Assembly (NCBI GenBank): GCA_002189035.1 | Contig: NEEC01000008.1 | Coordinates: forward strand, 2,170,001 to 2,234,000 | Origin: Utricularia gibba | Taxonomy: Eukaryota; Plantae; Magnoliophyta | Length of the DNA: 64,000 bases | Direction of reading: 5' to 3' | Part shown: positions 15,332 through 25,300 of the stretch, in pieces | Layout of the letters: each line of letters begins with the position of its first letter | Position numbering within the stretch: the first letter of the stretch is position 1 | The notes under the pieces: generated by a model | The model's input: only the letters and a program-made list of their open reading frames with translations | What the model was told of the DNA's origin: nothing | The model's database searches: none | Made by a program: the position numbers and the translations under genes

Positions 15332-17057
15332 ATGAATAGTAGGCCCCGAAGTATGGGGTTCATGATTCAGTGTTTGCTTGATTATCTGAAAAGGATGCAA
15401 GATGAGAACCCCAGTTTCTTTTATGCCGTTGATGATGATGATGAGCAGTTGGGAAATGTATTCTGGGCTGATTCCAACTCGCAGATGAATTACTGCTATT
15501 TTGGGGACACAATTAGACTGGATACATCGTATAGAACTAACCGTTCAAGGATGCCACTCGTAACCATCACTGGCATAAACCACCATGCGCAGCCAGTACT
15601 TTTTGGGGTTGGATTGATTCTTAATGAATCGGAAAACACATTCATTTGGCTGCTTGAGTCTTTTCTTCAAGCAATGTCGGGTAAGAGCCCTATCTCCATC
15701 ACCTGTGATCCTGACAGAGTCATTCAGATGGCAGTCTCACGAGTACTTCCTGCTGCGCGCACTCGTTTCTGTCGGTGGAGCATATTCAGGCAGACACATG
15801 AAAAGATGGGTGGTGTAGTGCAGGATAATCCTGGTTTTGATTTTGAGCTCAAGAAATGTGTTAATGAAGCCGATATAGTGGAGGAATTTGAGTCCTCTTG
15901 GGCGACCCTTTTGAGCAGCTACTTCTTGATTGATGATGAGTGGCTGCAATCCTTGTACAATATCCGCGATCAGTGGGTTCCTGTGTATCTGAAAGATGTG
16001 TTTTTTGGGGAAGTTTCCATGGTGGAGTGCGTGGATCCCTTGAGCCTACTCTTTGATGGTTGTTTGTCCTTTTCTACCAGCATACAGTCGCTGATTAAAC
16101 AATATGAGAAGGCCATTACCAGTTGGCATGAAAGGGAGTTAAAAGATGATCTTGATACTTGCAGCCACGCCCCTGCTCTTAAAACACCATCCCCAATGGA
16201 AAAACAAGCTGCAGATGTGTATACCAGAAGGATTTTCTTAAAATTTCAAGGGGAACTAGTTGAAACCCTAGCTAACTCTGCAAATATTGTCGATGATGCA
16301 GGCACAATATCAACATATCGTGTATCCAAATTCGGTGAAGAGAAAGACCATATTGTTAGATTCAATGCATTTCAGATGAAAGCAGCCTGTAGCTGTAGAA
16401 TGTTTGAGTTTTCCGGTATCGTTTGCCGACATATACTCTCTGTATTCAGAGCAAAAGATGTGTGGTTGCTTCCTGATGAGTATGTTCTGAAACGGTGGAC
16501 CAGAAATGCCAAAGCTCCCTCCAATGAACCAACAGTTCCTGCATCTGCTCCCATGCTCCCTCATAGTTATTATGAATCCAGAATCATTCGCCAAAGCAAC
16601 CTACGGGAAGAGGCTATCAAGTTTGTGGAAGAGGGTTCTAAATCCATACATGTCTACAATGTAGCAGTGAATGCCCTCCAGGAGGCCTCCAGAAAAGTAG
16701 CAGCTGTGAGAAGCAAAACCGGTGCTTCCTCCAAGGGTACTGCTAATGAGGCCAATGGTGGAGATTTGGAATCACATCCAACCCAAGATCATGCTTCTTC
16801 TTTCATGTCTCAGGTTCCATACTTGTGCTCTCTCACCCCAGTTTGAACATTTCCCTTAAACCCCTCAGTTTTGGCATGTGACACCGCAGGAAGAGAAAAA
16901 GAAGAGAATATGCGACCTGGAAAGCGAGCTGGAGGGAGTGAACCAGAGATGTGCTTTGTATCGCACGGTTCTTCAGGCCCTCTCCAGAGACATTGAAGAC
17001 CAGAAGCTGAAACTGTCGGTTAAGGTTCAAAACGCCAGGCTTTCTCTGAAAGAGTGA
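15332..17057 (+). CDS. FRS9: FAR1-RELATED SEQUENCE 9-like domesticated MULE transposase (no N-terminal FAR1 DNA-binding domain)
   Basis: Exons 15332-16813 and 16890-17057 with a 76-nt GT-AG intron. Contains the MULE core (GNVFWAD, GINHHAQPVLFG), a SWIM finger CSCRMFEFSGIVCRH and a C-terminal coiled coil ending KLSVKVQNARLSLKE, typical of FRS9. Confidence 0.9.
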
Positions 17058-17541
17058 AGAAGAAAAGGAAGCAAGCATAGACATTGTGAAGGTTTTGTCT
17101 TCGCCTGAGATGGGTACGGGGCGGGTCACCTCCTCTATGTTCGACAGATCTGGGCCCGGCGGGGGTGAGGCTGATTTTTGAGCTGAGGAGATCTCCACGT
17201 CGTCTTCTCAGAGCCGGCGAAAATATCTTTGCGCTGCGCCGACGGGTAGCCACGTGTATGCGCCTCGTTCGCCTGCGACGCCCCGAGCGACCTCCGCCAC
17301 TCTACTACCCTTGTGTACGGTGACCACAGGAATTAATCTGGAATATTTTTTATTTCCTTTTTTATTATTATTTAATTAGAGAATCTCGTCGTCACTATTC
17401 TTCATCGACGACCTGCAACAATGGCATTACTATAAATTTCGCCCTACGTTTCGTCTTCGGTTCCAAAACGTTTCTGGCAAGGAAGCGAATCGATCTTCTT
17501 CTCGCTGATTTTACGGCGAAAATTTGCGGGAGAGTCACAGA

Positions 17542-18009
17542 ATGAAAAGGTGCGAGCTCTGCAAACGGGAGGCGCGCGTGCAATGCGACGCGGATCTGGC
17601 TGCCTTGTGTTGGGATTGCGACGCTACGGTTCATTCCGCGAATTTCTTGGTAGCGCGGCATAAGAGGAGCCTGCTCTGCGAACTCTGCGCCTCGGTATTG
17701 CAGTGGTCGGCCGACGGAAGCAGATTGCCTCCGATATTGTCTGTTTTGTGCCAGCAATGCGCCAGCGGGCGCAACATAGGCGCGAAGAAGGCGGAGGATC
17801 GCGTTACTGAGGAGGAGGTTGTTCATGTGGTTCCAAGTTCTCCGGCCGATTCATGTTCGAGTAGCAGCAGTAAACACGAGTTGAGGGACGGAGATGCGCG
17901 ATCGAGAAGTAGTTGTTCGAGTAGGCGTAAGCGGGGGAAGTGCGACGACGTTCCGGAGGATTTGCGGAAGCGGCGCAGGGCGGAGAATGGGTGGGATTTG
18001 ATGAACTGA
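17542..18009 (+). CDS. Single-B-box protein (BBX28/29-like, no CCT domain)
   Basis: MKRCELCKREARVQCDADLAALCWDCDATVHSANFLVARHKRSLLC is B-box1. It is followed by CxxC remnants and a Ser-rich/basic tail; intronless, 155 aa. Confidence 0.85.
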   Translation: MKRCELCKREARVQCDADLAALCWDCDATVHSANFLVARHKRSLLCELCASVLQWSADGSRLPPILSVLCQQCASGRNIGAKKAEDRVTEEEVVHVVPSSPADSCSSSSSKHELRDGDARSRSSCSSRRKRGKCDDVPEDLRKRRRAENGWDLMN

Positions 18010-18857
18010 TTTAATTGTATTCTGAACTACTTATTTCAATATTCAACTAGGTACTGTTAAAAAATCAGGTTTAATAAAAATGAATTATAACCATATCTTT
18101 TTAATTACAATATTATTGTAATCACACACACACATATATATATATCTGGTAATGTGTGCAATAATATGTGACAACACGGTAATGTATGCTTTCCAAGCGA
18201 CGGCTGAGTGTGCTTACGTAATAACAAATAATTTAAATAAAATATTAATTAAATTATTTTACTAAAAACCGTCTTATGGATATGAACCTCAACCTTGCAC
18301 AGCAAGGTCATGCGTAAGATGTCCCTTCCAAGTTCTTTTTGCTACCCAACGCAAAATTGGTAGGATTAGTTCCACGAGTTGTAGTGTTGTGTGTGGTCAA
18401 GAACGAAGAAAAAAAAGAAAGTGTTGTGGGGTTCCCTGAACCAAATTTGAGGTCAAGAATGAGAGGGAAAAGTGGACAGTTGTGGCTGAGGCAGCTTCCT
18501 ACCGCATGGTAGAAACCTTAGCTGACAAGGAAAGATTTGGACCAGGAAAAGAGAGAAATCAAAACTGGGCCATGTTCTATTCTAACCTCCACTTCCCTGT
18601 GGCGGTCATTGTGTGCCACAAGTTCAAAGTATGGACTTCAATGCATGGTGGGGGCGGGCATTCCTGAGTACTGGGACTATACCTCAATACATGCTTGTTT
18701 TTTGTTTCAATTTTTCCAATGGGATGGTCAGTAATGTGTAACAGGATGCACTAATCGGTAGAACTCGATACTCGAATGAAAGTGAACTTAGACATCTGTT
18801 TAGCATAAGAATCTAGGCCTAGGAACAAACTCAGAGGGGTATGTCATGTATAAAAGC

Positions 18858-19923
18858 TTAGGCAAGTTTTATTGGTTTCCCGCAGAGCTTTTCTAACTCA
18901 GTTTCCAGTACCTTGAAAAGACTTCCCTGTGTGCGCCGGTATATCCAAGACTCTGTTGCTTGGTCCCAATCAAATCTGGATGGTCCACTGTAAAAAAGTG
19001 ATGTTGAGCTTCTCAAGGATTCCAATGTAGGACAGCATCGCGGTAGTAGGAGATGAATGAAGCTGGAGGAAAAGTACCTCACGGGGGATGACATCCAAAT
19101 CTGCCTGTTCGGCGTTTGCTTGTTTATGACATATGTTCCCGAGCTCCCAAGCTTCAAGGTCAGCACTTGATTCTGGATGACAAACAAAAGTTGTAGGGGA
19201 AACTGGATAATGCAGTCAGCCTTTAGTTAACAATTGATAAAAATAGCTAACCCCATAATCTATGTCAAAACCATCCATCTCCACCGCGTCCCGTATTCCT
19301 ATACACAAAAGGGAACCACTAAGATACATACAAGGAGAGCTTATGAATGAGCTAAACGATACCAAAAAGTTCCAAAGGGATTATAGCAACAAAGTTGAAC
19401 CATCAAAGGGAATCACCTCGAGCTTTTCAAGAAGATCATGGATGGTGGTGTCAGCCAACCGGTGATACTCGTCTTCCTGGAGGGCCGAGCTGAAAGAACA
19501 AGAGAAAATCACCGATCTTTCAGAAGACACCTTGATCGAAATCGAACGTTAAAGAATCCCTCCCTCTCCATAACGAATCCAAACTCAACAAAGGCAAATT
19601 ACTACCATTCACTACGTGAATTTACCCGAAGAAATCAAAATCCCCGAGTGGCGCATTCATTCCTCAAATACTCACCGGTAATCCGTTAATTCTGGCCCTG
19701 CAGACTCTTCGTTGATAGAAGAGTAAGACAGAGCGCGATGGTGCGCAAAACCCCAGCGCGATGAAATTTGAGAATCGGCGGCAGATGAAATCGACCGAGA
19801 TTTACTCAACAGAGACAATTGCGGAGAATTCTGGGCTCTAGAAACCGGAGACAACCACCGAAACGATACCAAAGCTCGAATCACCGCTCTGCTACTTGAG
19901 TAGAAGCAGCGAGGAACGGCCAT
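18858..19923 (-). CDS. FH: Frataxin, mitochondrial
   Basis: Five exons: a mitochondrial presequence-like N-terminus, then [71 protein letters not shown] and SGPSRFDWD...YRRT...[13 protein letters not shown]. Confidence 0.95.
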
Positions 19924-19983
19924 TTCATCAGTTCTGCAGTAGTTGCACTGCCGTATCTGTCACCTGATTGTCCTGACCTTTAG

Positions 19984-20040
19984 ATGGGCTTTTAATTGGG
20001 CCACAGACAATCGGCCCAATAAAATCAACATTGAGCCCAA
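19984..20040. promoter_or_regulatory. Cluster of four site II elements (TGGGCY) upstream of frataxin
   Basis: TGGGCT, TGGGCC, GGCCCA and AGCCCA lie within about 60 bp, starting about 60 bp upstream of the frataxin ATG. Site II motifs are TCP-bound elements common in nuclear genes for mitochondrial proteins. Confidence 0.6.
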
Positions 20041-20660
20041 CTTGATGAGCTGGTGTGTGGTCTGAACTCTGAAGAAACATTGATGGGTGATTATTACGCA
20101 TTCGCCCTTGCTTGGTATCAGGTCAACGATGCATCAATTATAAATTAAGAAGGATGGATTACGCTGATCGTAATTACCCAAGAGCCCTGTTTTCGATCTC
20201 AGGAATATGTGATATTATCCATTTAATGTACAATAAAATAAAAAATTAAAATACATTACTAAATATATTTAAACAGAAGCACAACTCTTTGATACTAAAA
20301 ACAGTAAATATTATATCCTCAAAGAGTGACATGATGATCTTTCATCAACCAGCTCTTCTTTTGTTATTGCAAGACTTGGAACACATCCTCATGGCACTTG
20401 AACCAGAATCCGGCGCCGTTTGTCTCCCGCCCAAGAGGTCTGGAACATGTGAAGACAACGTTTCGGCTTCGCATTCAGAATTGCAAAAACCACATCGAAA
20501 AGAAGAGATGTCTCTGCGGCACAGTGTGGATCGGATGACTTGCAATGCTGAACCTACAAGCGAACAAAATTCAGGCTCTTGGGATCACCCCTTCTACCAG
20601 ACTTTCCAATGAACCATCACAAGCATGAAGATGATACATTTACAAATTAGACATGTGGAG

Positions 20661-20778
20661 TGCCTCAGAGATAGATGTATAATCACTTGCAGTACAGACC
20701 CACCAAGTATGTTATCCCTGCGGAGCAGGGGCTTGGCTACCTGCCGCTCATATACTATCCAACGAAGCATCACCGGCA
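20661..20778 (-). ncRNA. Box C/D snoRNA, predicted guide for 2'-O-methylation of 25S rRNA U2347 (yeast numbering)
   Basis: Terminal stem TGCC/GGCA, C box GTGATGC (20773-20767), D' ATGA (20751-20748), C' GTGATTA and D CTGA (20668-20665). The D' guide UUCGUUGGAUAGUA forms 14 bp (one G-U) with 25S UACUAUCCAGCGAA, and the fifth-nucleotide rule points at UAC[U]AUCC. Confidence 0.8.
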
Positions 20779-20905
20779 AAATGTGAGTGTTCCCCAACAA
20801 ATCAAAAAGTTCAGTGTAAATATGCACTCTTTTATGCGAATCTAGTGGCTTTAATTTCAAAGCATGAACAAGGTAAGCATCCAGAAAACGAGACCAACAG
20901 ACCAT
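20779..20905 (-). ncRNA. Candidate box H/ACA snoRNA (copy B of a tandem pair)
   Basis: Two-hairpin layout with H box ATAAAA (20835-20830), basal stem GAGTG/CACTC and ACA followed by TTT (20784-20779). It sits between two C/D snoRNAs. No target could be assigned with confidence. Confidence 0.5.
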
Positions 20906-20920
20906 AATACATTGCTCGGT

Positions 20921-21058
20921 GGCAAAATGAGAATGTTCCCCGACAAATGAATAAGCTACACTGTAAAAAAGCAGTCTTTTCTGAGAATGCAGTGGCTTGA
21001 ATTACAGTTATTTCCAAGCATGAACGAGGTTAGCATCAAGAAAACGATACCAACAAAC
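20921..21058 (-). ncRNA. Diverged duplicate of the H/ACA-like element (copy A, possibly decayed)
   Basis: Aligns end to end with 20900-20775 (for example GTTCATGCTT, AAGCCACT, GGGGAACA and CATTTTGCC are shared). H box AGAAAA is at 20982-20977, but the ACA position reads TCA and the basal stem has a mismatch. Confidence 0.35.
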
Positions 21059-21180
21059 TAGAGTAAGTTGATGGGTGACACCAACTTTCTACCAATCAAG
21101 GGTTTTCTGAAGCAGGACGGGCATTCCTAGCGAGTATTCATCGTCGCCATGAAGACTGCAAATCAAATGTCTAAAAAAAA

Positions 21181-21278
21181 TTGGCTCATATCAAGAAATT
21201 CAACCATAATCCCTTGATGCTTCATAGATTGCACAGTGCAAGCCTCAGAAGCGCGGATAAAAGATTAATCATAGCCAA
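21181..21278 (-). ncRNA. Box C/D snoRNA, U36a-type dual guide for 25S A2220 and G2236 (yeast numbering)
   Basis: 5-bp terminal stem TTGGC/GCCAA, C box ATGATTA (21272-21266), D' CTGA (21248-21245) and D ATGA (21189-21186). The D' guide UUUAUCCGCGCUU forms 13 bp with 25S AAGCGCGGGUAAA. The D guide UGGUUGAAUUUCUU forms a perfect 14 bp with 25S AAGAAAUUCAACCA. The predicted targets are 16 nt apart, as for A2220/G2236. Confidence 0.9.
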
Positions 21279-21638
21279 TTTGAATGTTTTTTGCACATGA
21301 AGAAAAAAAGGAACGATCTTGTATTTTCAGATATTGCGGATGTCTTTAGAGGTAAAATCATTGAAGAAGAAAGACGAAACCCCCACGTGAAAACCCGCAT
21401 TACATATTTGCCTCCATGACTAGCCCCTTTCCCATTGCACTAAGCGATCGGGAAACAGCTAAAGGTGTGGAGAGGCAAAAGCAAAGAAAGTGACGGAAGA
21501 CAAGAACTTGATCGCTTCATAAACGAAAAGCCAAACGATGACGACGGATTCGATACGAATCCAGAGACGCCATGAATCATGAAGCAAACCTGCTTACAAG
21601 CTTGAAGGAAAGGCTGCAGTTTATCGCCCAGCGGCTAC

Positions 21639-21715
21639 TAGGGTTTTATTATGAATTGTGGCATCGGCTAGGGCTTCGTTTCGTATAGGGCCCGGGCTTA
21701 CAAATGAATTGGGCT
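21639..21715 (-). promoter_or_regulatory. Telo-box plus site II promoter of the snoRNA host transcript
   Basis: AAACCCTA (21646-21639) lies downstream of GGGCCC and TGGGCT (21710-21715) site II-type motifs, followed by a GTAAGC donor at 21597. This TeloSII architecture is established for plant snoRNA and ribosome-biogenesis genes. Confidence 0.65.
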
Positions 21716-22376
21716 TTTCTCTGAAATGGAGTGTGTGCAGCGGGAAGAGGGAAGACGGCGGCAGGCCAGAGACGAATTCGCGAAAATGCTTGCTTGGCCT
21801 AACCTGAATCACCCATGAGCTCATCGGCGAGTGAACAATCCAGACACCTTCGGATGCTTTTACTGGTGTTTTGGAATGTGAGGCCTTGCATTTAATGAAT
21901 GATCAGAAACGCCGAGGGAAACTTCCGGCGCGCCAGATTTCTGCCGGGAAACTTGTATTTTTCTGGGTGGAAGTACTTAAGTTTCAACTTATATCTCCTC
22001 ACTCTGAGACTACTGAACTTATTCTTACATCATCATCATCAACATCAGAAAGGGGTGTTTCAACGTTTCAGGAGTGCCATCACAAGCCTGAAGATGACAA
22101 AAGACCAGCCTTCGAAGGCTTTATGTGCTGAATCACGAAACAACAACCTTATCGAGAGGATAGTGCAAACAATAGATACAGGGTCCCCGCCCAGCTGGTG
22201 AGGTTTAGCATACATAACCGTCATTGGAACTTCGAAGTTCTCAAAACTTCACGGCGGATGATGATCAACCGGAATCCGTTTGTTCGGCCCTAGAAAAGGG
22301 AAACATGAGCTGAGCATGTTGCTTGAAGTTGTGACTGGGAATGAGGGGTGTAGTCCTAGAATCAGTTGTCTTCCTC

Positions 22377-25300
22377 CTATGTGCTCAAAGCCACCTTCCG
22401 TATCAGATCCAGGAGGTCACGTACAACATCAGACATGAGTGGTCTGAATTCCGGCTCATTCTGCAACAGAAAAACAGATCCCTGTATTGTGTTTGAAGAC
22501 AGAATGTGTTGCTACTTTGATCGTGCAAGAAGAACACTAACCAGAACACAGCGTGAAATGATATCAACGAAGTGGGACAAGGATTTCCCCGAGCATTCTC
22601 CAACAAGCGCAGGATCAATCATTTTTGACAAGGCATCGATGTCGTGGAGTTGTGGGATAGCCCATCTCACCAGATACTGCTCTCCCCGGGGTCTACTCCT
22701 GTGAAGAGTATGTAACACACATGATGAAGACTACAGGGAAACCAGAGCAAGCCGGTGGTGTTATGTTTCTTTACCGGTCGTATGGCATTCTTCCTGTTAG
22801 AAGCTCAAGCATCACCACCCCAAAACTGTAAACATCGCTTTTGGTGGTGTATATCCCTGACTCGAATTCCGGTGCACCGTAGCTGTAAGTGGTGAGAAGC
22901 TGTTCTGACAACTAAATCATCAAGGTAAACAATTAGCATCTGCATAAAGCTTTAGGCAGGATTAGAGATTATAAAGATGACCACCTGGCTTACATCTACT
23001 GACTGCATCAATGGAGCCAACCCACAGTCAGAAACAAGAACAGAAACATCTTCATCAAGTAGAATGTTTGCAGACTTGAAATTTCTATGAATAATGGGTG
23101 GTTCGCAGACCTCATGCATGTACCTTACACCAAAGTTTTGTCAATCCAGCAGAACTCATGAGTCCAAAAAGCTGAATAAAAGCATGGTAGCTAAACTAAG
23201 TTGCGTCAGTGAACTTACTCCAGTGCCCTGACAGCCCCAAGAGCAATTCTGATGCGCATATTCCATGTCAAGTTCTTCTTGAATTCATCATCCGAGTGGA
23301 GAGCATCATACAGAGTTCCATTGACACAAAATTTGTAAATGAGAAGCCTTTGGGAATGCTCTGAGCAATACCCCATCAGGTCAACCACATTCGCATGCCG
23401 AATTTTATCAAGGCTATTGATCAGGTCAATAAACTGGTCATCCTTCAACTGGTTTGCTACTTTTGGGTCCAGTTTCTTCAATGCAACCAACTGCAAAATG
23501 CATGAAAATGAATTTCCAAAATGATTTTTCACATTCCGCAGAACACAGATATGAAGTAGAAATCATACCCTTCCATCTGGTAGTTGTGCCTTGTAAACAG
23601 CCCCAAGCATACCACTTGCAACAAAGTTTTCCCTTGAAAAGCTATCAGTGTACTGCTGAAGAGATGCTATTGTATACGCCCTTACTGAAGTTCTTGACTC
23701 TGTAGAAGGCCTGATGGAGGCTCCTTGTGGAGGTGAAATTGGATGTACAGTAACTTTATCAGGAAGTATAGGGGGAGTTGGCGGAGGTGGAGGAGGCGGC
23801 AATATATCCATCTCAAAGCTACTAGTATCAGTCACATACTCATTTAGCTTAGAAGCTCTCATATTTTGTGTGCTCACATCTTCATTTCGCAGCTTAGGTA
23901 TCAAACCCATTGATCTATGATGATCCAGAGGTTTTACCAAAACAGCAGGTGCAGTAGAAGCTGTTACATGGAGTTCACGAGCCCGTCAGGAAAAGGAAAT
24001 CATCAAACATAATGAATGCATGAAAGCAAGCAACCATCAATTGCTCATACAAATGATTACCTTTCTGTTCTCCGTGGCTTGGTAAAGTAACTGAACCAGC
24101 ATCTCTAAGATTCTCTCTGGTGCCAGTTTCAGGAGCAATCTCATATCTTTTTGGGGTCCTATGCGATTCACTCCCTCTACTCTCCCTAAGGCATCTCGGC
24201 AAGAGAAGCAGGATTACCAACAGCAATACGACGAAAGACAATGCTACTGCAATGGATATGACTACAACTCTTCTCGTGTTGGAGGAGGTTCTTGAAGTAC
24301 TTGAATTTGAGTGAACTTTTGTAGATGGTCCTTCAGCATGGGTCGGTGGTGGCGCTCGCCCTGAGGTCGGTCCAGGGAAAAATGGCACTCCTGGAGGCGG
24401 TTTTTCAACAGAAGGAGGCTGAGCTACTGGAACGAAACTGCTGGAGTTAAACGGATTCCCTTCTTTCCTGCACTCAAAAAATATTCAAACATCATGTCAG
24501 CACACAAGCAAAAAAAAGATCAGGCAACTGCTCAACATCCACAAGGTACAAAGCAGGGGTTACCGGAAATTAGGTATGTTCAGTAGCTGTGAAGGTATTG
24601 GCCCCGAAAAAAGATTGTTCTCTATGTTTCTACCATTCAGAGAAAAAGAAAGATGACTTGCCAAGCTTATGGAAGACATGAACAGATACACAGCACGTAT
24701 GAGAAATATTACAAATCCTTCAGTGGAAGATCCTGCAAAACGTCAAGAGTTCCAGAGAGCTGATTATTCTGCAAATGACTGCCAATGAGACTGTGAGTTA
24801 CTTCATGCAAATAAAAAGAGCAATTATCACAATATCCTATTTACTCACAGGGTTGTAAGGGATGACAGATTCTGCATTGAAGGGGGTAACTGTCCACTAA
24901 AATTATTGCTTGATAAATCACTGTATAAATAAGAGTTGAAGCTGCTCATAACCATCTGTGCTTTTAATGCTAAAAAATATGCAAAAATCAGACACGTACA
25001 AATTAGTCAAAACTGAAAGGTGTGTGAAAGAATCAGGAATTTCTCCAGATAATTCGTTGTCGTTGAGGGACCTGATCAAGTTCATTCTGTTAAAAAAGGG
25101 TAGAACAGACAAGCATGAAAAAAAAAGAATAGTGTGGTACTTACATCGCTGACAACTGAGTCAGAGAAGATAAACTACTTGGTATAGTTCCAGTAAGCTT
25201 GTTGTCTGAGAGAAAGCTGTGAAAAAAGCAGAGAGTGCGTCAAATTCCTAATTGACACAGATCATTTCCATTTCTTCCTTGAATGATGTTCAAACCTACA

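Follow-up and report, generated by a model that had tools for sequence, protein, structure and literature searches.

The bladderwort Utricularia gibba carries a non-coding stretch within a 64,000-nt segment of contig NEEC01000008.1 (assembly GCA_002189035.1, forward-strand positions 2,170,001 to 2,234,000; this whole segment is called the window, and all positions refer to it). The stretch lies between a STRUBBELIG-receptor-family (SRF) kinase gene, whose last exon ends at ~22005, and the frataxin gene (ATG at 19923), and its minus strand holds a series of snoRNA (small nucleolar RNA) genes and gene relics. The open reading frames of this apparent gap are short and without a credible Pfam match, in agreement with a preliminary description made from the sequence alone. 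In the order of transcription the series comprises an H/ACA-shaped element, here called X, the box C/D snoRNA U36a, a degenerate homolog of U38/Z223, a pair of tandem units and a homolog of snoR6/Z278.

Transcription of the locus

The RNA evidence consists of Logan assembled contigs from four RNA runs belonging to three studies, placed on positions 18800-22600. Together they define a primary transcript, a polycistronic pre-snoRNA of ~1.34 kb (20275..21617, minus strand), with its 5' end at ~21617-21607. Continuous unspliced contigs extend over 20280-21560 in run X1, 20270-21607 in run X3 of the same study and 20830-21617 in run X6 of another; in run X5, from the third study, the locus is covered by separate contigs. 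The X3 and X1 contigs each span all cluster members, which therefore share one precursor. The same runs yield frataxin with four introns removed and SRF with one, and RNA depth falls to zero at 19943-20196; spliced neighbours and a silent spacer indicate that the signal is RNA and not contaminating DNA. Library types are not on record for these runs, one of which has poly(A)- and adapter-like ends. In this run, X6, an identical adapter-like loose end follows both 21617 and 20864, and poly(T) loose ends precede both 20275 and 20830, from which it follows that the RNA is of the minus strand, begins at ~21617 and has its poly(A) site at ~20275. The 3' tail of the transcript (20275..20661, minus strand) includes no recognisable RNA gene and has no homolog in the clusters of other plants. 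The X6 contig that ends at 20830 carries 16 non-templated A's at a place where the genome has only four. This end and the one at 20864, both within the second tandem unit, look like polyadenylated or cleaved intermediates of precursor processing or decay.

Motif scanning places a Telo-box, AAACCCTA, at 21639..21646 of the minus strand, 22-29 nt upstream of the mapped 5' end, and a Site II element, TGGGCT on the plus strand (AGCCCA on the transcribed strand), at 21710..21715, ~95 nt upstream of it. The Telo-box sequence occurs six times in the 64 kb, both strands counted, and none of the TATA-like motifs listed in PMC4660826 is present in 21560-21900. The combination of a Telo-box with Site II (TGGGCY) is well documented as characteristic of polycistronic snoRNA genes and ribosomal-protein genes in plants (PMC4660826), and the minus-strand promoter of this type that had been proposed earlier is indeed there. 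RNA polymerase II would start ~25 nt downstream of the Telo-box, with Site II further upstream, and transcription would yield the ~1.34-kb RNA polyadenylated near 20275. Endo- and exonucleolytic processing would then release snoRNAs able to assemble into protected small nucleolar ribonucleoproteins (snoRNPs). The locus resembles the TeloSII-driven polycistronic snoRNA genes of plants (Qu et al. 2015, PMC4660826; Leader et al. 1997, cited in PMC8053127) in its Telo-box and Site II, in the several snoRNAs carried by one polymerase II transcript and in its non-coding nature. It differs from them in lacking a listed TATA-like motif and in having a polyadenylated and rather abundant precursor.

Box C/D members and their guides

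Among all Rfam families applied at gathering thresholds to the entire window, snoU36a is the only one found. U36a (21182..21277, minus strand) scores 69.4 bits against RF01302 (gathering 45) and is recovered with an E value of 1e-20 by nhmmer, using hidden Markov models (HMMs) built from plant orthologs. Its boxes are AUGAUUA (C), CUGA (D') and AUGA (D), and alignment with nine orthologs shows every box, both guides and the terminal stem to be intact; AUGAUUA and AUGA are the norm in the plant family. Guides of the C/D members were tested under the box+5 rule with 200 shuffled-guide controls, on a plant 25S reference, L144, which contains complete 18S, 5.8S and 25S sequences. L144 comes from an assembly of a Rubiaceae leaf-nodule symbiont, and its numbering agrees with that of Arabidopsis RiboMeth-seq in the region used. 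On this reference the D' guide of U36a pairs at G2237 and the D guide at A2221, each at box+5. Both positions are assigned to U36 by Arabidopsis RiboMeth-seq, which likewise assigns A1143 to U38 (PMC8053127 Table 1). U36a looks functional as a predicted guide for 2'-O-methylation of 25S A2221 and G2237.

The snoR6/Z278 homolog (20662..20777, minus strand) is a second box C/D gene, with 22 bits against snoZ278 (RF00201; gathering 36) and a match to positions 6-123 of the ortholog HMM (E 1e-9). It keeps its boxes (GUGAUGC at 20773-20767 as C, CUGA at 20668-20665 as D), a GCC/GGC terminal stem and the conserved internal hairpin; its guide regions differ from those of the orthologs. The family guide AAUCCAAY upstream of NUGA is not kept, and a different 15-nt guide (20766-20752) precedes a D'-type box AUGA (20751-20748). 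This guide pairs with 25S at U2348 over 14 contiguous bp (2345-2358), a fit reached by 3 of 200 shuffles, and 20 of 21 plant rDNA contigs share the identical target sequence; the guides of Z278 orthologs at the D' position are shorter and point elsewhere. For the D-box guide the search of rRNA gave no target (189/200 shuffles equal its best). The gene looks functional, and 2'-O-methylation of 25S U2348 is its predicted activity. The three methylation targets named in the preliminary description, two for U36a and one for this gene, thus hold by complementarity on plant 25S. That the orphan snoR6/Z278 family acquired its 14-bp guide to U2348 in this Lamiales lineage is a weaker point and may be taken as a suggestion.

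At 20760-20753 the guide of the Z278-like gene has GUUGGAUA where the orthologs have the reverse-complementary (U)AUCCAAC, which could reflect a small inversion or coincidence. In place of the short antisense that the family carries to the 25S ~2918 region, the window guide is thereby antisense to the U2348 region. We take plant U2348 to be the equivalent of yeast U2347, which is 2'-O-methylated under the guidance of snR65; the Z278-like guide would place this equivalent nucleotide at box+5 as well. Unlike the yeast case, there is no sequence homology to snR65, the plant family is otherwise orphan and the Arabidopsis position is listed as a pseudouridine and not as a 2'-O-methylated nucleotide (Nm). 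Given a methylation in yeast, a pseudouridine in Arabidopsis and the C/D target predicted here, the type of modification at this nucleotide may differ between lineages.

Between these two genes lies the U38/Z223 homolog (21078..21155, minus strand; 23 bits against snoZ223, RF00135, gathering 45; ortholog HMM E 2e-9). It matches HMM positions 7-73 only, the 3' third being missing, and neither CUGA nor a complementary 3' strand occurs after HMM position 73, so that the D box and terminal stem are absent. Its D' box reads CAGA, and two substitutions affect a guide that does not vary among ten orthologs. On L144 the canonical U38 guide pairs at A1142/1143; at the A1143 site (Arabidopsis 25S 1139-1151 taken from the PMC8053127 supplement) the window copy places a C opposite A1145 and another opposite U1148, leaving 6 contiguous bp. 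Retargeting of this guide to 25S A1238 (10 bp) was considered and rejected: 43 of 200 shuffled guides equal it, and the guide has no significant rRNA target. This U38 homolog is a pseudogene with a dead guide.

A conserved cluster of flowering plants

In Arabidopsis thaliana three clusters (copies -1, -2 and -3) have the composition snoR134/U36a/U38/snoR6/snoR97, mixing H/ACA and C/D snoRNAs (Kim et al. 2010, PMC2875012 Table 1). For comparison, metagenome contigs were scanned for the U36a D' guide plus box, which gave a true U36a in 23 loci. Fourteen low-GC loci of plant type show the order snoR134 - U36a - Z223 - Z278 (one or two copies) - snoR97, each member at 55-146 bits. Z278 is equated with the snoR6 family on the strength of guide strings given for snoR6 of grape and peach (PMC5122169 supplement), which match Z278 orthologs. 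In the window neither snoR134 nor snoR97 was detected with ortholog HMMs or with Rfam at E<=10, and the permissive Rfam scan, which covered 20200-22100, gave no match to any H/ACA family at E<=10. The Rfam analysis thus confirmed U36a outright, while Z223 and Z278 remained below gathering.

Taken together, promoter, transcript, homology of the three C/D genes, gene order and element X make it very probable that the locus is a partly eroded local copy of a conserved angiosperm cluster, (snoR134)-X-U36a-U38-snoR6-(snoR97), transcribed independently. At least two C/D snoRNAs had been recognised from the sequence alone, and a polycistronic, non-coding transcript with members of both types is what the analysis supports. 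The suggestion that the combination might be undescribed does not stand: the arrangement is not new, being published in Arabidopsis and conserved across flowering plants, with the same order in the 14 plant contigs. The window and Arabidopsis clusters are alike as mixed H/ACA and C/D polycistrons with an identical C/D order (U36a, U38=Z223, snoR6=Z278), in the U36a targets A2221 and G2237 and in expression as an independent precursor. The window copy differs in having no detectable snoR134 or snoR97, a U38 pseudogene, an element X upstream of U36a that the Arabidopsis lists do not give, tandem units inserted between U38 and snoR6, and a snoR6 homolog with a different and longer guide. The functional-looking members would be X, U36a and the snoR6/Z278 homolog, snoR134 and snoR97 having apparently been lost from this copy. 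The Arabidopsis HID2 clusters snoR4/snoR5/U31/U33/U51 (PMC8053127) consist of other snoRNA families and are also mixed C/D and H/ACA polycistrons, which shows how ordinary such an arrangement is in plants.

A second type of cluster occurs in other plants (L118, 1500-2900, and L063), with a Telo-box TAGGGTTT and the order X - U36a - Z223 - Z278 - snoR97 - snoR8a - SNORD25. It has no snoR134 and begins with X, as the window cluster does. In another plant contig (L033, 470-855) the gap between snoR134 and U36a is 30 nt, with no X between them; the Arabidopsis clusters may share this state, which could account for the lack of X in their annotation.

As a hidden snoRNA locus the cluster is ordinary, an ortholog of a published Arabidopsis cluster, and its value in this respect is mainly for annotation. 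It is also a natural example of turnover within a cluster, in which two H/ACA genes were lost, U38 died through guide and box mutations and the guide of an orphan C/D family was replaced. Such turnover bears on the drift of rRNA modification patterns between plant lineages.

Functional copy or decaying paralog

Several observations weigh against a working cluster. With two canonical members absent and another dead, the locus could be a paralog in decay, other copies supplying its functions. The Z278-like gene has AUGA and not CUGA as its D'-type box, and the hinge of X is not a strict ANANNA. Arabidopsis has no Nm at U2348, which is listed (as U2337) as a mapped pseudouridine with no guide (PMC8351944 Supplementary Table 2). 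The precursor is the only form seen and is rather abundant, which could also mean that processing is inefficient. Finally, an X5 contig joined to the spliced SRF gene (21632-22460) reaches 21632 and crosses the snoRNA promoter, making some read-through transcription into the cluster possible. The SRF ends in X1 and X3 lie at ~22005-22019, short of this point, and the X5 extension is either a long 3' untranslated region or read-through toward the cluster.

Consideration must therefore be given to a paralogous cluster that is still transcribed while no member, or only U36a, gives a working snoRNP and intact copies elsewhere act in its place. The dead U38 and the loss of snoR134 and snoR97 would fit, as would Rfam scores lower than in other plants (U36a 69 against 84-92; Z278 and Z223 22-23 against 55-80), the existence of three paralogous copies in Arabidopsis and the abundance of the unprocessed precursor in the window species. 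However, U36a retains every box, both guides and its stem, the guide duplex of the Z278-like gene is unusually long, and both X and the Z278-like gene keep their structures and show no variants among accessions, unlike their flanks. Runs X5 and X6 show 17 variant sites over 20275-21617, of which a single one falls in the 363 nt of X, U36a and the Z278-like gene, where ~4.6 would be expected (binomial p ~0.035); it lies at 21213, in an internal loop of U36a. Wholesale decay is accordingly considered unlikely, without being negligible, and a partly eroded copy with working members is preferred.

Element X, a candidate H/ACA snoRNA

The leader of the window transcript matches the snoR134-U36a interval of other plants with E values down to 1e-14, and the conserved block of this match is element X (21329..21479, minus strand), an H/ACA-shaped snoRNA candidate of ~150 nt with two pocketed hairpins, a hinge and a terminal AUA plus 3 nt. 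Upstream of U36a it recurs, with 100-130 bits, in 11 other plant loci, and L033 alone lacks it. Rfam searches at E<=10 and at E<=5 gave no match to X, it is a paralog of neither the snoR134 nor the snoR97 family, and its conserved motif was not found in searches of literature text or supplements. The preliminary description had placed its H/ACA-like structures in the tandem pair, which is not supported; this separate element at 21479-21329 is the conserved H/ACA-shaped one.

In the window X folds as hairpin-pocket, hinge, hairpin-pocket and AUA plus 3 nt with a minimum free energy z of -2.5, no shuffled sequence among 200 being as good. The two-hairpin architecture recurs in all eight orthologs when the halves are folded separately. 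The pockets measure ~8+4 nt and their strands are the most conserved bases of the element. In hairpin 1 the outermost pair is U-A or C-G and the sixth pair C-G or U-A, depending on the copy. Different sequences form the lower stem of hairpin 2, which always ends 0-1 nt before the ANA box. Pair counts were made on a MAFFT alignment (A2), where 87% of the cells of the structure are paired as against 33-55% with slid partners, and 10 pairs have double changes; the lower stem of hairpin 2 taken alone is 65% paired there, equal to slid partners. The ANA box reads ACA in three, AAA in three and AUA in two of eight copies, with a further AAA in L048, the 3' end being a predicted one. The hinge has an invariant A-N-A-U located 14 nt from the pocket top, and in most copies the sixth position of ANANNA is not A.

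A bipartite pocket search gives 25S U2447 as the global best target of the hairpin-1 pocket. The window copy forms 14 bp in all, which 4 of 1000 shuffled pockets achieve; L041, L025 and L118 form 16 bp (0 of 1000), and L028 forms 13 bp. In L013 and L086 one base of the fit stays unpaired, and the fit of L014 is poor. For the hairpin-2 pocket no rRNA target as long as 10 bp was found. Plant-type rDNA contigs show no variation in the core U2447 target, which always lies 227 nt after the start of the U36a site. The numbering of PMC8351944 Supplementary Table 2 is 11 lower than that of RiboMeth-seq, as established by the agreement of A2221/A2210, G2237/G2226, U2422/U2411 and U2456/U2445, and U2447 is therefore U2436 of that table. 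In this 2021 compilation U2436 is a pseudouridine credited to the mapping of Sun et al. 2019; its snoRNA is given as "nd", no human or yeast counterpart is listed, and neither of the pseudouridine mapping papers assigns a guide to it.

By its fold and pocket complementarity X looks functional and is predicted to direct pseudouridylation of 25S U2447. The fuller proposal, that X represents a widely conserved angiosperm H/ACA family, absent from Rfam and apparently unnamed, and is the missing guide for the plant-specific pseudouridine at Arabidopsis 25S U2436 (=U2447), is put forward tentatively, at somewhat less than an even chance. It amounts to a strong and specific prediction for a modification that is mapped in Arabidopsis and has no assigned guide.

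Alternatively, X might be a conserved processing or structural element of the precursor and not a snoRNA, its match to U2447 being fortuitous. The relaxed hinge, the variable ANA box (ACA, AAA, AUA), the poor support for the lower stem of hairpin 2 on the MAFFT alignment, the less convincing pockets of L013, L086 and L014 and the absence of X from L033 are what one might expect of such an element. It would leave unexplained a textbook H/ACA architecture in 8 of 8 orthologs, with a stem ending beside the ANA box, pocket strands more conserved than any other bases and a pocket top 14 nt from the invariant hinge A. It would also require U2447 to be by chance the global best target in five of eight orthologs, with fits that few or no shuffles reach, and to coincide with a mapped pseudouridine that has no assigned guide. 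This alternative is thus distinctly improbable.

Host-gene intron and tandem pair

Expression from an independent, unspliced and polyadenylated precursor is the usual mode in plants. The preliminary description had proposed instead a host gene with a first exon of ~20 nt, a GTAAGC donor at 21597, an intron of ~1.04 kb reaching a TTGTAG acceptor at 20554 and containing all the snoRNAs, and a second exon, the snoRNAs being released from the intron. GT at 21597 and AG at 20554 are present in the sequence, and intronic snoRNA clusters are known in plants, for example the intronic H/ACA clusters of Arabidopsis (PMC2875012). A rare isoform may escape contig assembly, and an exon as short as 20 nt is difficult to place, so that a minor spliced form is conceivable. 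However, no junction between 21597 and 20554 occurs in the four RNA runs, which do recover four frataxin introns and one SRF intron, and the contigs read through 21597 (X3 to 21607, X6 to 21617). The AG at 20555-20554 does serve as an acceptor in one contig of run X6; the donor joined to it is 20703, inside the Z278-like gene. This defines an optional GT..AG intron of 150 nt (20554..20703, minus strand; joint 20551/20702 with "cut +2"), whose removal excises the 3' part of that gene. Of the earlier model the acceptor is therefore retained, with another donor and in a single run, and the short first exon and long intron are not; an intronic origin of the snoRNAs is very unlikely.

Tandem units 1 (20931..21058) and 2 (20785..20922), both on the minus strand and ~81-83% identical, are not supported as snoRNAs: the view that the pair (21058-20785) represents two lineage-specific H/ACA snoRNAs, one intact and one decaying, draws on the ACA followed by 3 nt that ends each unit, on a motif resembling ANANNA in each (AGAAAA or AUAAAA) and on two short hairpins that differ between the copies by both-sided changes. 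It is scarcely credible given the lack of any Rfam match (E<=10) or homolog in the 14 plant clusters, fold z-scores of -1.1 and +1.0, a single compensatory pair matched or exceeded in 54% of column shuffles, the absence of a stem closing beside the ACA, an "H box" sitting inside the only large domain, a share of 6 among the 17 variant sites, and the location inside unit 2 of both a cDNA 5' end (20864) and a poly(A) addition (20830). The pair is lineage-specific filler.

Neighbouring genes and comparative material

In the contig placement the joint of the third frataxin intron (19292-19416) reads GT..CA, its two sides being separated by six letters. The reading is an artefact of alignment, the exon starting ~6 nt further upstream, near 19298. 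Beyond frataxin a single-exon FAR1-related ORF, FRS9, is followed by a small B-box gene (15332-19923), an order kept in Paulownia, Sesamum and Handroanthus (L001-L003). The intergenic distances there are about ten times larger than in the window, whose genome is very compact. A synteny walk from the FRS9 ORF found no snoRNA in the FRS9-B-box loci of Paulownia, Sesamum, Handroanthus and Erythranthe, which end before frataxin.

Homologs of U36a with both guides conserved also occur on GC-rich contigs (0.50-0.62; L009, L020, L053, L054, L055, L078, L105, L107 and L108). They have a canonical CUGA D box and different C boxes, and are presumably not from angiosperms.

The rDNA references come from a scan of bacterial genome assemblies for the stretch of 25S that the two U36a guides define; a scan of viral contigs for rDNA gave none. 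Many nominally bacterial assemblies (L126, L144 and ~120 other loci) carry contaminating eukaryotic rDNA contigs, among them leaf-nodule Burkholderia and Caballeronia, Frankia, and various Streptomyces and Collinsella metagenome-assembled genomes. An exact 43-nt fragment of Arabidopsis 25S is present in 24 of the contaminating contigs, which identifies those 24 as plant-type. Such contigs provide a useful reference and at the same time represent a contamination issue for the assemblies concerned.

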